Notes: generated by a model not told the origin, from the letters alone. A DNA stretch of 64,000 bases from Pocillopora damicornis (GCF_003704095.1 NW_020844837.1:310001-374000), one strand, 5' to 3'. Positions 14,336 to 29,753 are shown, numbered from the stretch's first letter. Numbers and translations: made by a program.

Positions 14336-14842
14336 TCATTCGGCTTCTTCAATCCGTATTTCTGATGTAAGTGAATCAACACTGACACGTTCTAAATTCA
14401 AGGTGGATGACAAACCTCCATCGCTACCAAGAGTTTCACAGCTCGAACTCGGAGAACATAGTTCAGAATCCACAACAAAATCAGAGCAAATTCCAGTTTC
14501 TTTTGAATCCATGTCTTTTAACACAGTACTCAGAAACGTGATGTATTTCATAGCTAGTTTAAGAATCTCGTGCTTGGAGAGTTTTTTGTCTGGTGGATAA
14601 GTTGGAAGAAGTTTTCTCAGCTCACCAAAGGCCATGTTGACATGATGCTGTCTCCATCTTTCTCGACTGTTTGTAAAATTTCTTCGACTTTGGAAAGGAT
14701 TTTCGAAGCCAAAACTAACGGGTCTCCTTCTTATAGTTGTGCCAAAATATCCCAATGGAATGGATGCACTATTGTAATAAGGTGAAATCACTGGTTTCCG
14801 AGCTCGCGTGCAGTTGTGATGTGTTCCTTTCCTACAAGACAT
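14336..14842 (-). CDS. SCL/TAL1/LYL1-family class II bHLH transcription factor, paralog 1 (intronless, 168 aa)
   Basis: [52 protein letters not shown] closely matches the TAL1 bHLH ([48 protein letters not shown]). Confidence 0.92.
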
Positions 14843-17613
14843 CGCTCATATTGCGTGATCTCCGAATATATCAAGATGATCCACGCTATGCGGAGTTACT
14901 TGGCAAAGTCTTCCATATGCGATATCTACCCCCAATACTGATCTACTGGACAGTCTAAGTATATCGATAGTTACGTGATTAAACTCCAAATTAGGACTAT
15001 ACTATCTCGTGCACAGGAGATAAAACTTTTGACAGAGTGAAACGATATACTGACGAGTTTCCCCTGGTCTTGTTTACTAGAAATAGCAAGCCCTTGAGAT
15101 AAGTTTCCCTATTTGTCAAAGCAATATCAGGTCTTGTTTTGATAAATATCGAAATGTAGTCTGTATGAGCCAATCCGATGTCAAAACTACCGTCATATCA
15201 GCAAAATCTAAAACCTCCAGGTATCGCGGACTAAATTACAAAACTCCCTCCAATGTCAAGTTAACCACCAAATGTCTTTTCTCTCTCTCTATTATGATCT
15301 TGTGCGAAGGTGACGCAAACGCGCGCAAGTCATAGTTTTCCAGAAATGTGCATCTTTTGGAAAAAGTAACTGTTACATAAGGGTTTTTTGTCATATTCAA
15401 AATGTCTGTTTTTTTGGGAGGGTGGATTAAGGAATGAGTACAATGTTTAGTTTAGACTTGTCTGTTGAATTTGACGTGACTCATTATCAAGTTGCTTCTT
15501 TGTTGACTTAACCTTTTAAGCCTGGAGAAAAAGCAATTATTTGAGTTTTACGACAACGCCTACCCACAGTGGTTCTTCAAACAAACTACTTTAAATATTT
15601 GAAGTACAAAATTAATAGGATTAACATACTTGAGTTCAGCCACGCAAACTTTATACACCAATCGATAGTAATTACCTTAGGGATCCACAAACTGCCGGTT
15701 TTGAAATACCATCAGATAAAAGACTTGTAATTATCTTAATGTCTTTTTATAATCCCGACTAATTAGTGGGAAGGTTACTTTTCGCCTATGAAAGCTATGT
15801 AGAGAAGCTTATTGACTGCCAAAGGAGTCCACAACTGGACTGATATACCGAAGTAGGACACACGCACGTTCCAGAAATTTTTTTCAGTCGCGAACGTCTT
15901 AGTCAATATTGTATTGTGAGTTAACGTAATAGATTTAAGAGCATTCCTGAAGTGAAGAGAGCCAATTTACTTTAGTGGTTTATATTTCTACGAATTAACT
16001 ATAAATCACCCGAGTATAATTCCGGGTATAAAAGGGATATGTGATAAAGACACCATTTAGCACTACTTTGGTGAGATATTAAACTTTCACCTCAACTAAG
16101 TAGTTTTTGAACTGTACTTTGGATTGTACAGTGGTTGTCTTTGAATTTCGTGCACGGTTAAGATGAAACTCACCATGAAATTTAATGAAATCTAATCAAT
16201 CCAATTCACGACTAATAGAAAACAGGACATTCGTGAGAACCCAACAGGACATCGGAGACAGACAGGCTCAATACACCGCTGAGAGCCACAACGATTGAGG
16301 CTCAAGGTAATCAAATACATTCAATTAATCCCTTTAATACATTCCAAATTTTATATTTAAGAATACTGAAAGGGAACTTTGTTGACCGATTTCGATCGGA
16401 GAAACAAAAATTGATCTAAGATCAGGCTATAATCTACAGCTTATCTACTATATATGTACGTCACTTTGTTAACTAGAAAGTTCGCTTATGTCAAATTGAC
16501 ATGAAGATACTGCAAATCCTGAACTAGTTGCACTAATACCCACTGTATGGCACCATACCATGAAAATTTTAAGATAGTGTAGGAGACAATTATCTTATTT
16601 CTCGATTTGTCATTGTCCATTTGTTGACAGAATATAACCACAAGTATATCCTGTGCTACGCTTTTACTTAGAAAATGGGTGTTCATTTGCGCAGAGCGCA
16701 AAAAAAAGAGAGGTTCTTTTTACAAGCCGCACTACCATCGTTTACGGTTTATCTACAGAAACTCCTGAACAGGCCAGGCCAGAAGTCGTTGCTTTATTAC
16801 ACCTGAGTCGAAGAAAATTCTAGTTTAAGAGAGCACATAATCAACACAGCTCTGCTGGCTTGTAGTGGAGTTATTATTAGCTAAAGTGCGCTGGCTATGA
16901 ATGCAGTCAATAAGAAGAAGACCTCAACAGTATCACTAAACCTTGTCTACATCTAGTCTGTTAATTTTGTCTCAGTGTCAAAGTGTTGAAGTTAACTCAG
17001 TCTCTTGCGATGAAGAAACAGTTTATGAAACAGACAGCTCTTAGTATGTTTGCCACATTTCGCCTTAAAAAGTACATGCATAGGTTAAGAAAGTCGTAAT
17101 GTATTGATTAAGAACACTTTGATTGGGGAGACGAGCACAGTGATTACATAATTCACAATTTTCTTTAATTGGTTCAGTGTTGTGGTCTCTTGGAGAGCTC
17201 CTTAACATCTGACACATAATCTAAACCACCATTCCAGTGATCAGCAAAGAAAGCCGGCAGCGTTATTCGATGGAATTTTAGTTGATTGGATTTAATTTCT
17301 TGTAGCCCGCTGCCTTCTTTCAATAGACATGTAATCCTGAAGATTCCAGTGGGAAAGAAATGTCACTCGAAGTGATTGCTATCTCAAGAAAATGACGGAA
17401 ACGATTTTACGCCATAATGGTTAATTACTTACATGTAAAGAAACAGATTAACATTTGTGGTGACTTTGTATTTGCCGACTGAATTATCTGCCCTTTGATG
17501 TCAAGTTGCCACACATAGTACAAACTAAGATGAGCTGAGTTACATTCCTGTCAAGTTTTTCACTTTCTCATACAATATTTGCCTATTCTAACCTCTATTT
17601 AGGGACAATTTAA

Positions 17614-17813
17614 CCCCTAACTCTCAAGGTCTGATTGTTAATTCTCCCTCCTAGCTGCTACACATATCCTTGTAAATCAGTTACAAGAATTTGGAGTTAG
17701 ATCAAGACAACTTCTTCCTGAAAGGTTTGAGTATTCTCATTACCTGTCTGCTGGATAATGAATGACTATTTTAGGGAGAAGTTACATGTTGATCACTTCT
17801 GGGAGTTAAAGTG
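17614..17813. mobile_element. piggyBac-type MITE family A copy
   Basis: Reverse-complement homolog of 24411-24615; starts TTAA-CCCCTAACTC. Confidence 0.75.
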
Positions 17814-18990
17814 TTGAAGGCAGGGCTAGTCACAAATCAAAAATCCTACCGCACGAAAAGCGAAAGACGAAAACAAATAAATAAATAAATTAATAAATAA
17901 AAACCCACGGAGGAAACCCTGAGAGAAAATATTTCCCACTATGCATAGTAAACAATCCTTGCTATTACATAAGCTGTGACTCCGTGACATAAAAAAAAAC
18001 TTCGTATGAAATGTGAAAAAGTGCGAAGGCAATTTTTGCAGTGGAGTTCTGAGAGAAAGTAAGAAAAAACGATATCAATGCTAGTCCAAGTCTAAGGCAA
18101 ACTTGAAACCGCAGAAAGTGTTTTCAAACTTGCTCTGTTGTGATTTTATTTTCTTTGGCGAAAATCATCAAATATTGCCCAACAAATTCACAGCACCATC
18201 AAGAAACCGTTTTGTACATAAAATACCCTCTTCGTTATAATATGACGTTAAGCTTACCTATCTTAGAATGATTTATTCAACTTTAAAACATATCCGAACA
18301 AACTATAAATCAAACCTACAATTTTGTTAGCGACACATTTTCCAGGTTCATTGTTTAATAATTATCGGTCAGTGTTTTCCATAACCTTGCTACATAACTG
18401 AAATCAAGCCTCCAAGTTGGCTTTCCTGCTGGCTCTGACCTACAGCTCAGCTGGGGAACTGTTGTTACATATACATATCCTTACCAGCCTAATTAAAGAT
18501 AACCTTTTCAAACAAGCTCATTACATTCTTCGAGTGTCAAATCACTGCATCACTTTACACGGCTTTTCCATATTTAACTCATACAGTATTAAAGTATTAG
18601 ACTTATCAACTGGTCGCATCTCTGTGATGTTTCAGGTATTTCCTTCGTTTTGTCGCCTGCTTGTCCGCCTCTCTAGTAAATAAGTGGTCGGTAAATAAGT
18701 GAGGTCCGTAAGCTACGATATCACCCGGATTCTATTTCAACCTTTTGAGAATCATATCTTACGGTTTTCGTCTCTTTTATGTTCACATGATTTAGAAACA
18801 AGTTAGAAAAATACAAAAATTCAATATATTAACAAAATTAAATTAAGTAAGCATGTGTCTTATAGAACCGTGGAAGATACAAATCGTCCATGAAAAACTT
18901 CTCTGCAGGCAACAAAAACATTGATGAGTCTGGAAACAACTAGGTAACCCATGGTAAGAGTAAATGTTTTACTTAGTTGTAGAGTTTTGA

Positions 18991-29145: not shown

Positions 29146-29152
29146 TATAAAA
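29146..29152 (+). promoter_or_regulatory. TATA box of bHLH paralog 3
   Basis: TATAAAA(G) about 50 bp upstream of ATG 29199, preceded by a GC-rich element. Confidence 0.6.
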
Positions 29153-29198
29153 GCTGCTGGTGTTAGTAACAGAGTACAGTTACTTTGCGAGACGAATC

Positions 29199-29753
29199 AT
29201 GAACATGGATTATCAGCATTTTGAAGGAACAGCTCTCGAACCATATGCACATTCACCTGAAGGCTCTGCCTGCAGCTCGAGCGGGTCAGAAACAAGTTTA
29301 AGCCCGACACCATCGCCACAAGCTGCAATGTTTTACCCGCCAGGACACAGACTTACACTCTCCTACCACAATCACTGTCAGTCGTACATGAAACGACTCT
29401 ACACAAACAGCAGAGAGCGGTGGAGGCAACAACACGTTAATCTGGCGTTTGGTGAGCTAAGAAAACTACTTCCAACTTATCCACCAGAGAGGAAACTCTC
29501 TAAGAACGAAATCCTTAGACTTGCTATGAAGTACATCCGATTTCTGGACGATCTTCTCAAAGACATGGGCGACAACAGCAAGCAGAATCAAGATTCACGC
29601 GAATGTGTCTCTGACACAAAGCTCAAAGAAGAAAGACGAGAAAAAGGACAATTACACTGCAAAAGACAAACCAACTGTTCTCTTTCATTAATGGAAGGAA
29701 TGGAAACAAATGTTATCGACTCAAACGCGCCATCGATATTTGACGCGCATTAA
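29199..29753 (+). CDS. SCL/TAL1-family bHLH transcription factor, paralog 3 (intronless, ~184 aa)
   Basis: [52 protein letters not shown]. First ATG at 29199; the ORF-track GTG start at 29160 lies only 8 bp after the TATA box and is probably upstream of the TSS. AATAAA at ~30124. Confidence 0.93.

Follow-up and report, generated by a model that had tools for sequence, protein, structure and literature searches.

A tandem triplet of SCL/TAL-family bHLH genes in Pocillopora damicornis is very probably the stony-coral copy of an old triplication shared with sea anemones

The window, a 64,000-nucleotide stretch of the genome of Pocillopora damicornis (GCF_003704095.1 NW_020844837.1:310001-374000), contains three intact basic helix-loop-helix (bHLH) ORFs of 168, 157 and 197 aa, here called g1, g2 and g3. 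Their places and strands (-, +, +) are exactly those given in a sequence-only reading of the same DNA, which had also supposed a non-bilaterian host; the animal is a pocilloporid stony coral. The features of the locus, with positions counted from the first letter of the window, are:

10150-11007, + strand, MT-A70 (METTL4-like) methyltransferase exon of the flanking gene (Pfam MT-A70 E 1.1e-16)
12001-38000, no strand, CpG-retaining domain holding the triplet (CpG o/e 0.63-1.12 in every 2-kb bin)
14336-14842, - strand, g1, SCL/TAL-family bHLH gene with one coding exon (ORF, 168 aa)
18488-18747, no strand, conserved non-coding element in the spacer of the divergent g1 and g2, candidate cis-regulatory (80-84% identity in Orbicella L014 and coral contigs L025 and L026)
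20036-20242, no strand, assembly gap of 207 N in the g1-g2 spacer (N run, unfilled)
21975-22448, + strand, g2, SCL/TAL-family bHLH gene with one coding exon (ORF, 157 aa)
25862-26469, no strand, dispersed-repeat insertion in the g2-g3 spacer (at least 40 genomic copies, 70-95% identity)
28851-30164, + strand (assumed from the ORF), extent of the unspliced g3 RNA contigs (polyA/oligo-dT RNA-seq)
29199-29753, + strand, g3 coding sequence (184 aa counted from the first ATG)

The mechanical ORF of g3 starts with a GTG at 29160, hence its 197 aa; the first ATG is at 29199. Each gene encodes one Pfam HLH domain (PF00010; g1 E 4.1e-18, g2 E 5.9e-19, g3 E 1.2e-17), with scores of 63.9-68.1 bits against a cut-off of 20.7. 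In-frame stops were found 2-17 codons 5' of each of the three ATGs, and the gene models of the orthologues in six other species have spans of 3 x (aa+1), both of which support the earlier claim of single exons as far as the coding regions are concerned. For g3, the gene that was compared with RNA, the claim holds for the assembled transcript too. Contigs from independent polyA/oligo-dT studies covered 28852-30164 (1314 nt, run X3), 28851-30088 (1239 nt, X9) and 29418-30086 (X1) with no joints, reaching ~350 nt 5' of the ATG and 335-410 nt 3' of the stop; such contigs cannot prove the ends or the strand of the transcript. Word depth was 15-68 on g3 versus 0-5 on neighbouring intergenic DNA, and an AATAAA lies 3' of g3 at 30124. 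We conclude that polyA RNA assemblies contain an unspliced g3 transcript. The extra upstream exon of the Stylophora g3 model (208 aa, 770-bp span) was not adopted, the P. damicornis RNA contigs having no such splice.

As had been proposed, g1, g2 and g3 are all members of the SCL/TAL family. They carry the 23-letter SCL-type signature as well as the 26-letter SCL-type basic region and helix 1 (a 13-letter motif was read from each of g1, g2 and g3), where the NSCL type has RERIRVEAFN; reference motifs for human TAL1/TAL2/LYL1, NHLH and invertebrate SCL were those of the additional files of PMC1828162. When solved structures in the PDB were searched with g1, TAL1 ranked first (2ypa, E 8e-25), ahead of Twist1 (3.6e-11) and NeuroD1 (7.5e-10). 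The named database matches of all three genes were TAL1/LYL1, genome annotations of relatives already label these genes TAL1-like, and the 234-Mb genome has no strong SCL match besides g1, g2 and g3. The bHLH phylogeny that the sequence-only reading had called for placed g1-g3 with vertebrate TAL1 and LYL1 in one clade (support 99/98), apart from nine further bHLH genes from this genome whose motifs we took to be Twist-, Hand-, Paraxis-, PTF- and ASC-like; all the signal of this tree comes from ~144 columns, and its references exclude NSCL and invertebrate bilaterian SCL. Motif, PDB ranking and tree together rule out that the three genes fall into different bHLH families. The Nematostella orthologues had likewise been placed in SCL (support 96/64/92/100; PMC1828162). 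Within the SCL clade the cnidarian genes form a group of their own (98/94) that excludes vertebrate TAL1 and LYL1, which bears out the proposal that the coral duplications were independent of those behind TAL1/TAL2/LYL1. With the TAL1 and LYL1 sequences in the tree, no one-to-one orthology of any of the three genes with a vertebrate TAL1/TAL2/LYL1 paralog was found.

The spacers measure 7,132 bp between g1 and g2 (207-N gap included) and ~6.7 kb between g2 and g3, close to the ~7.1 and ~6.8 kb noted earlier. A CpG-retaining block around the genes is real, its o/e contrasting with 0.04-0.25 in the flanking gene bodies (8-12, 38-44, 46-52 and 54-60 kb), but it extends over ~26 kb and not the ~20 kb first estimated. 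In invertebrate genomes, CpG-rich, unmethylated domains are expected for developmental regulators, and this domain is presumably unmethylated. An ORF and Pfam check found no further genes in the spacers, only a repeat fragment and ORFs that match no family, in agreement with the earlier statement that the block has no other gene. A 132-aa ORF (25962-26360) considered as a hidden gene is part of the dispersed repeat and has no Pfam match; the insertion is lineage-specific, being absent from the Stylophora locus, where positions 14035 and 14034 of the Stylophora stretch (L013) abut. RNA contigs over the repeat were of high depth and mismatched. A 151-aa ORF (23862-24317) was likewise discarded as a spacer gene (no Pfam match), and no structured RNA of any Rfam family reached its gathering score in 12-38 kb.

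The microsynteny comparison across anthozoans that had been suggested recovered the -, +, + order in corals and in two anemones. The whole triplet is found in Stylophora, coral contig L026, Actinia tenebrosa (WAHB01001418) and Nematostella vectensis (OW051985), besides the P. damicornis window. Adjacency of g1 and g2 is seen in L026, Actinia and Nematostella and also in Orbicella and coral contig L025, the compared stretches of these last two ending before the third gene (the Orbicella locus holds 4,958 N). At the Acropora locus only the g2 orthologue was found within +-10 kb; some corals may thus have a less compact or a disrupted triplet. In the octocoral Xenia, the one locus examined (L023) carries a single SCL gene, with one coding exon, and an MT-A70 gene lies 2.6 kb upstream of it, matching the MT-A70 neighbour of the window (tblastn E 1.3e-13). 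The tree matched the genes one by one: g2 with Nem20 and Actinia P0064 (100/96), and g3 with Nem18 (P0199) and Actinia P0200 (100/98). The scleractinian g1 genes form a clade (100/99) whose link to Nem19 is an open fork in the free tree search; a tree constrained to join g1, Nem19 and Actinia P0056 scored 2.48 lnL above that search (p-AU 0.62). On this constrained likelihood and on position, g1 is probably the Nem19 orthologue.

The cluster is neither new nor unusual, and here the sequence-only reading did not stand: it had itself named an already described, standard triplet as something that would refute it. Simionato et al. (2007; BMC Evol Biol 7:33) placed Nem18, Nem20 and Nem19 within ~15 kb of Scaffold_23 of Nematostella with 'no putative intervening genes' (PMC1828162, additional file 17; see also additional file 13). 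The triplet has thus been on record since 2007, the window genes are its orthologues in the same order and orientation, and Stylophora, Actinia and another coral have it too. The whole word 'SCL' is absent from PMC4083563. Shared as it is with Nematostella, other corals and anemones, such a triplet is a known and ordinary feature of hexacorals. Very probably a single cnidarian SCL/TAL gene was triplicated in tandem long ago, and the locus is the copy that stony corals inherited. That triplication would predate the split between sea anemones and stony corals, with order and orientation (g1 leftward, g2 and g3 rightward) presumably unchanged since.

Two other accounts of the cluster were weighed. 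A scaffolding artefact, with the N gap joining two unrelated pieces, is suggested by an estimated-length gap between g1 and g2/g3 in a short-read scaffold assembly, and it was the danger named by the sequence-only reading. The gap is intergenic and outside every ORF. Its two flanks (19202-20014 and 20282-20655) match Stylophora L013 at 6290-7096 and 8242-8612 with order and strand preserved, in a contiguous stretch with 1 N in 20 kb. Collinearity with Stylophora on either side of the gap shows the cluster to be no assembly artefact; the g1-g2 adjacency recurs in five other sources (Orbicella, L025, L026, Actinia and Nematostella), and we regard such a misjoin as extremely improbable. Equally hard to credit is a recent, coral-specific duplication running parallel to the Nematostella cluster. 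It could appeal to the heading 'Nematostella-specific duplications', under which the anemone duplicates were discussed (Simionato et al., 2007; PMC1828162), and to the likeness of the paralog bHLH cores (59-69% identity). The genes nevertheless group by paralog and not by species with the g2 and g3 support given above, which already contradicts it, and two anemones and three corals show them in one and the same order and orientation. The paralogs moreover align with one another over only 57-91 residues around the bHLH, in agreement with the earlier description of them as unalignable outside it. Being older than the anemone/stony-coral split, the duplications are not Nematostella-specific.

The remaining alternatives concern the state of one gene and the origin of the ancestor. 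Compared with their Stylophora orthologues, g1 has 92% aa identity (dN/dS 0.25), g3 93% (dN/dS 0.16) and g2, the fastest-evolving paralog, 77% (dN/dS 0.62). These values, the long branches of g2 in the tree and its altered LMO-interface positions (L242A, D245E) might be taken as a hint that g2 is a decaying or non-functional copy and the locus two working genes plus a relic. Yet g2 retains an open frame of comparable length (145-177 aa) in all the hexacorals examined, which a very old split separates; its bHLH core is intact down to the RERWRQ basic region, and ~170 bp 5' of its ATG are conserved in other coral families. We consider decay of g2 quite improbable; all three frames are intact and under purifying selection. 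Somewhat less remote, and compatible with the old triplication, is an ancestral cnidarian SCL that arose as a retrocopy, with DNA-level duplication following later. In its favour, every anthozoan SCL gene seen has a single coding exon, the lone Xenia gene included. Against it, neither a poly-A tract nor a target-site duplication nor a parent gene came to light, and many bHLH genes in this coral genome are single ORFs as well, so that intronless coding may be the usual state of the family; on balance a retrocopy origin is unlikely.

Each gene encodes a small group-A bHLH transcription factor from its one coding exon. Judged by the family, each protein would pair with an E-protein, bind E-box DNA and be able to recruit an LMO/LDB bridge, and the paralogs would serve different cell types. 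An exon for a LIM_bind (LDB-type) domain was found in the genome. The interface of TAL1 with LMO2 involves L213, H217, F238, L242 and D245, and Y235 contacts E47 (PMC3714592). Mapped by TAL1 alignment and motif comparison, L213, Y235 and F238 are kept in g1, g2 and g3, the H217 position is Tyr in all three, the L242 position is V in g1, A in g2 and L in g3, and the D245 position is D in g1 and g3 and E in g2. LMO binding may accordingly differ among the paralogs, given the Tyr at H217 in all of them and L242A in g2. In Nematostella, the SCL/TAL1-family gene 'tal1-like' is reported in parietal body-wall muscle (PMC10060217).

The 260-bp element at 18488-18747 was the sole conserved non-coding candidate found. 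It is collinear in Orbicella (L014) and contigs L025 and L026, where the spacer around it does not align, and a five-species alignment shows long invariant runs, AGATAAC among them. The element is single-copy in the genome, matches no Rfam family, and was undetectable at the anemone loci, Nematostella included. One reading built on it is that the triplet forms a constrained regulatory block with shared cis-regulatory DNA, this element being the candidate, and that it is a hexacoral innovation tied to new cell types, for example distinct muscle populations. The innovation part is drawn from Xenia, which has one SCL at the examined locus beside the same MT-A70 gene. We hold this reading tentatively, as possible though rather doubtful. 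If it were true, shared cis-regulatory DNA would explain why the arrangement of the three genes has outlasted the anemone/stony-coral split.

Among known systems the Nematostella Nem18-Nem20-Nem19 cluster is the closest. It too has three SCL genes with single coding exons and no intervening gene, reads Nem19 -, Nem20 + and Nem18 + as in the window, and agrees paralog by paralog, down to shared motifs (KHEIL in g1/Nem19, SKV.ILRT in g2/Nem20, and YMKRLYTNS... with a further 12-letter stretch in g3/Nem18). It differs in its spacers (3.5 and 11.3 kb, against 7.1 and 6.7 kb here) and its flanking genes (Pro_isomerase and thioredoxin, against MT-A70 here). Vertebrate TAL1, TAL2 and LYL1 are of the same bHLH family, with a nearly identical basic region and helix 1 (RERWRQQ.VN.AF.ELRKL). 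Those paralogs are dispersed in the genome. They arose independently of the coral triplet, whose proteins are much shorter (157-184 aa) and carry the Tyr at H217, and their haematopoietic and endothelial context has no equivalent in a coral. Tandem group-A bHLH duplicates without intervening genes are also known from other cnidarian clusters: Nematostella has 7-9 physical bHLH clusters (Simionato et al., 2007; PMC1828162), a bHLH expansion has been described in muscle cell types (Cole et al., 2023; PMC10060217), and further tandem bHLH clusters lie in the P. damicornis genome itself, on contigs C2640, C2707, C105 and C2150. Unlike these, the SCL triplet is small, ancient and strongly diverged, whereas the Nematostella paper treats its clusters as lineage-specific. 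The sponge Sycon ciliatum is another non-bilaterian with multiple SCL and SCL-like genes, some linked on one scaffold (PMC5064789), but these would represent an independent sponge expansion.

With cnidarian SCL triplets on record since 2007, the locus opens no new question. What is modestly new is that the triplication is shared by stony corals and anemones with order and orientation unchanged, an old feature of hexacoral regulatory genes, together with the single Xenia SCL at the examined locus, the unspliced g3 RNA and the 260-bp conserved element. On a small scale, the locus could be used to study how duplicated regulators of cell type stay together, and the conserved element in the spacer and the more rapidly evolving g2 in the middle would be the places to start.

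The three SCL/TAL-family bHLH genes of the window, g1, g2 and g3 from left to right, were recovered at the places and on the strands assigned to them by the sequence-only reading, as complete frames with one Pfam HLH domain each (64–68 bits):

14336-14842, minus strand: g1 ORF, complete, 168 aa
21975-22448, plus strand: g2 ORF, complete, 157 aa
29160-29753, plus strand: g3 ORF, complete, 197 aa counted from GTG (first ATG at 29199, giving 184 aa)
10150-11007: exon of an MT-A70 (METTL4-like) gene; such a gene flanks the SCL locus here and in Xenia (L023:3853-7344)
18488-18747: conserved non-coding element, 260 bp, middle of the g1-g2 spacer
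20036-20242: assembly gap, 207 N, in the g1-g2 spacer and outside every ORF

The ATGs of the three genes are preceded by in-frame stops at distances of 2, 5 and 17 codons. The span of the coding region equals 3 x (aa+1) in the orthologue models of Stylophora (two of three), Orbicella, Actinia, Nematostella and Xenia, which indicates a single coding exon. The three proteins share the basic region and helix 1, RERWRQ(Q/H)(N/H)VN(M/L)[13 protein letters not shown](D/E)(K/R)KLSK, and align with each other over just the 57–91 residues surrounding the bHLH. A six-frame search of the entire 234-Mb assembly returned no further strong SCL match (next-best bHLH E 1e-10, versus 2e-20 or better for g1, g2 and g3). 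Among named relatives, Stylophora pistillata is the closest (77–93% aa identity; DNA ~82% identical over roughly 19 kb).

Assignment of all three genes to the SCL/TAL family held up. The best solved-structure match of g1 was human TAL1 (2ypa, E 8e-25), followed by Twist1 (3.6e-11) and NeuroD1 (7.5e-10), and named database matches for the three genes were TAL1, LYL1 or 'TAL1-like'. In a maximum-likelihood tree of 40 proteins and 144 columns, built without NSCL or invertebrate SCL references, g1, g2, g3 and their cnidarian relatives formed one clade with vertebrate TAL1/LYL1 (branch supports 99/98), set against nine other bHLH genes from the same genome that are Twist-, Hand-, Paraxis-, PTF- and ASC-like by motif. 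NSCL reference sequences read RERIRVEAFN in the diagnostic stretch (PMC1828162), unlike g1, g2 and g3. Within the larger clade the cnidarian SCL genes formed a clade of their own (98/94); the triplication is therefore independent of the vertebrate TAL1/TAL2/LYL1 duplications, as had been proposed.

The sequence-only reading had also raised the possibility that the cluster was an assembly artefact across the N gap. This was checked by the coordinates of the gap flanks on the Stylophora locus L013, which holds 1 N in 20 kb. Window 12860-20014 matches L013 11-7096, and window 20282 onward matches L013 8242 onward in the same order and strand. The g1-g2 adjacency was found again in five further genomes, so the join across the gap is sound; together with the L013 collinearity, this excludes the artefact. 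A second assembly gap (36320-36456, 137 N) lies downstream of the cluster, within the CpG-rich domain.

The sequence-only reading had named a triplet already described as standard in the lineage as grounds for refutation; an orthologous cluster in Nematostella vectensis has been in print since 2007. Simionato et al. (2007, PMC1828162, additional file 17) listed three SCL genes of Scaffold_23 as a physical cluster, noting 'no putative intervening genes', and the three were located here on the chromosome-level record OW051985:

Nem18: OW051985 21149403-21149939, minus strand; Scaffold_23 290902-291093 (PMC1828162)
Nem20: OW051985 21161220-21161657, minus strand; Scaffold_23 296862-302054 (PMC1828162)
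Nem19: OW051985 21165191-21165754, plus strand; Scaffold_23 305463-306026 (PMC1828162)

Read from the opposite strand, the order is Nem19 minus, Nem20 plus, Nem18 plus, the arrangement of the window. The bHLH of Nem19 shares KLSKHEIL with g1, that of Nem20 shares KLSKV.ILRT with g2, and that of Nem18 shares YMKRLYTNS...[12 protein letters not shown] with g3. SCL gene counts in the same survey were three in Nematostella, three in human, one in most invertebrate bilaterians and zero in Hydra (PMC1828162, additional file 1). The minus, plus, plus order recurs in Actinia tenebrosa contig WAHB01001418 (P0056, P0064, P0200), in Stylophora L013 and in the 568-kb coral contig L026; in Orbicella and coral contig L025, where the sequence examined ends before the third gene, the first two are arranged as in the window. 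The tree clusters SCL genes by paralog rather than by species: g2 groups with Nem20 and Actinia P0064 (100/96), and Nem18 and Actinia P0200 are joined by g3 (100/98). A clade of scleractinian g1 genes has support 100/99; the free search did not settle whether Nem19 and Actinia P0056 belong with it, and constraining this union gave a tree 2.48 log-likelihood units above the free-search tree (p-AU 0.62). Paralog-wise grouping and shared arrangement place the triplication before sea anemones and stony corals diverged, roughly in the Cambrian or earlier. We conclude that the window cluster is orthologous to the one published for Nematostella and that such a triplet is the norm in hexacorals, so that it holds little novelty.

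The octocoral Xenia sp. has one SCL gene at the locus examined, with unrelated genes 1–3 kb off on either side and no second bHLH there by tblastn. Next to it on the upstream side is an MT-A70 gene, a homologue of the MT-A70 exon of the window, and the Xenia SCL gene is sister to all hexacoral SCL genes with weak support (92/63). These results suggest, without proving, that the triplication took place in hexacorals at a locus where MT-A70 and SCL were already neighbours, and point to an old linkage of these two genes across Anthozoa; within 10 kb of the Nematostella cluster no such linkage was seen.

Transcription of g3 was examined in RNA-seq assemblies (polyA or oligo-dT) of independent studies, whose contigs are not proof of transcript ends, strand or expression level:

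28852-30164: g3 RNA contig, 1314 nt, run X3, genome-collinear, no joint
28851-30088: g3 RNA contig, 1239 nt, run X9, genome-collinear, no joint

Word depth was 15–68 in the g3 contigs versus 0–5 across the adjoining spacer, and an AATAAA lies at 30124. The NCBI model of Stylophora g3 (L013:16694-17463; 208 aa, 770-bp span) adds a short exon upstream; no splice matching it was found in the RNA contigs of the window species, and the model may be over-extended. Relative to Stylophora, dN/dS was 0.25, 0.62 and 0.16 for g1, g2 and g3 (dS 0.16–0.21). The g2 gene evolves much faster than its neighbours (77% versus 92–93% aa identity), and its frame is nonetheless intact across every hexacoral examined.

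CpG o/e was 0.63–1.12 in all 2-kb bins from 12 to 38 kb versus 0.04–0.25 in flanking gene bodies (8000-12000, 38000-44000, 46000-52000 and 54000-60000), which we take to be a presumably unmethylated domain beside methylated gene bodies, a mosaic-methylation signature as known from invertebrate genomes. It was also high (0.6–1.1) around 60–62 kb, at a C2H2 zinc-finger ORF. The Stylophora alignment spans the whole region at 73–84% identity, which is near synonymous divergence and thus uninformative on constraint. In comparison with more distant corals, few non-coding blocks were left. Apart from the 260-bp element, these were ~1.2 kb ahead of g1, ~170 bp ahead of g2, a stretch on each side of g3 (~500 bp upstream, 1.1 kb downstream) and short blocks of 45 bp in the 3' flank of g1. 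Two of the latter (13802-13846 and 14046-14100) are 86–95% identical in Orbicella and L026, and these short blocks may be 3'-UTR regulatory sites. The 260-bp element is 80–84% identical in three coral lineages (Orbicella and two coral contigs), in which the spacer around it does not align. It is single-copy, has invariant runs including AGATAAC, matched no Rfam family and was not detectable in the anemone loci. We regard it as a candidate enhancer; nothing else in these data bears on the earlier idea that the three genes may share enhancers. The g2-g3 spacer carries a dispersed-repeat insertion of roughly 600 bp (25862-26469; at least 40 copies, 70–95% identity), absent from the orthologous Stylophora spacer and represented in the RNA assemblies by high-depth, mismatched contigs; its 132-aa ORF, which has no Pfam match, we take to be a transposable-element remnant.

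Tandem bHLH expansions also occur outside the window, as dense ORF groups at C2640:566-623 kb (at least nine bHLH matches within 57 kb), C2707:122-216 kb, C105:56-134 kb and C2150:116-127 kb; the Hand-like pair of C2150 resembles the published Nematostella Hand pair Nem6/Nem21. An 851-aa open frame at 53394-55949 is rich in lysine and serine, contains nine consecutive His and has no Pfam match; it probably represents a single large exon encoding a disordered nuclear protein.

By analogy with the family, each SCL protein would bind E-box DNA as the dimer partner of an E-protein. The SCL residues that face LMO2 in the TAL1:E47:LMO2:LDB1 structure are L213, H217, F238, L242 and D245, and Y235 faces E47 (PMC3714592). 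Placed via the g1-TAL1 structure alignment and paralog motifs, L213, Y235 and F238 are retained in all three proteins and H217 is Tyr in all three; at the L242 position g1 has V, g2 A and g3 L, and at the D245 position they have D, E and D. From the pattern at these two positions, g3 is by sequence the paralog closest to TAL1 and g2 the one furthest from it. The genome has a LIM_bind (LDB-type) exon. In Nematostella, one SCL/TAL1-family gene, named tal1-like, separates parietal from circular body-wall muscle (PMC10060217). Beyond the published cluster, the present analysis makes modest additions: the pre-scleractinian age of the triplication, the kept orientation of its three genes, the Xenia locus with its single SCL gene beside the same neighbour, an unspliced transcript of g3 and the spacer element.
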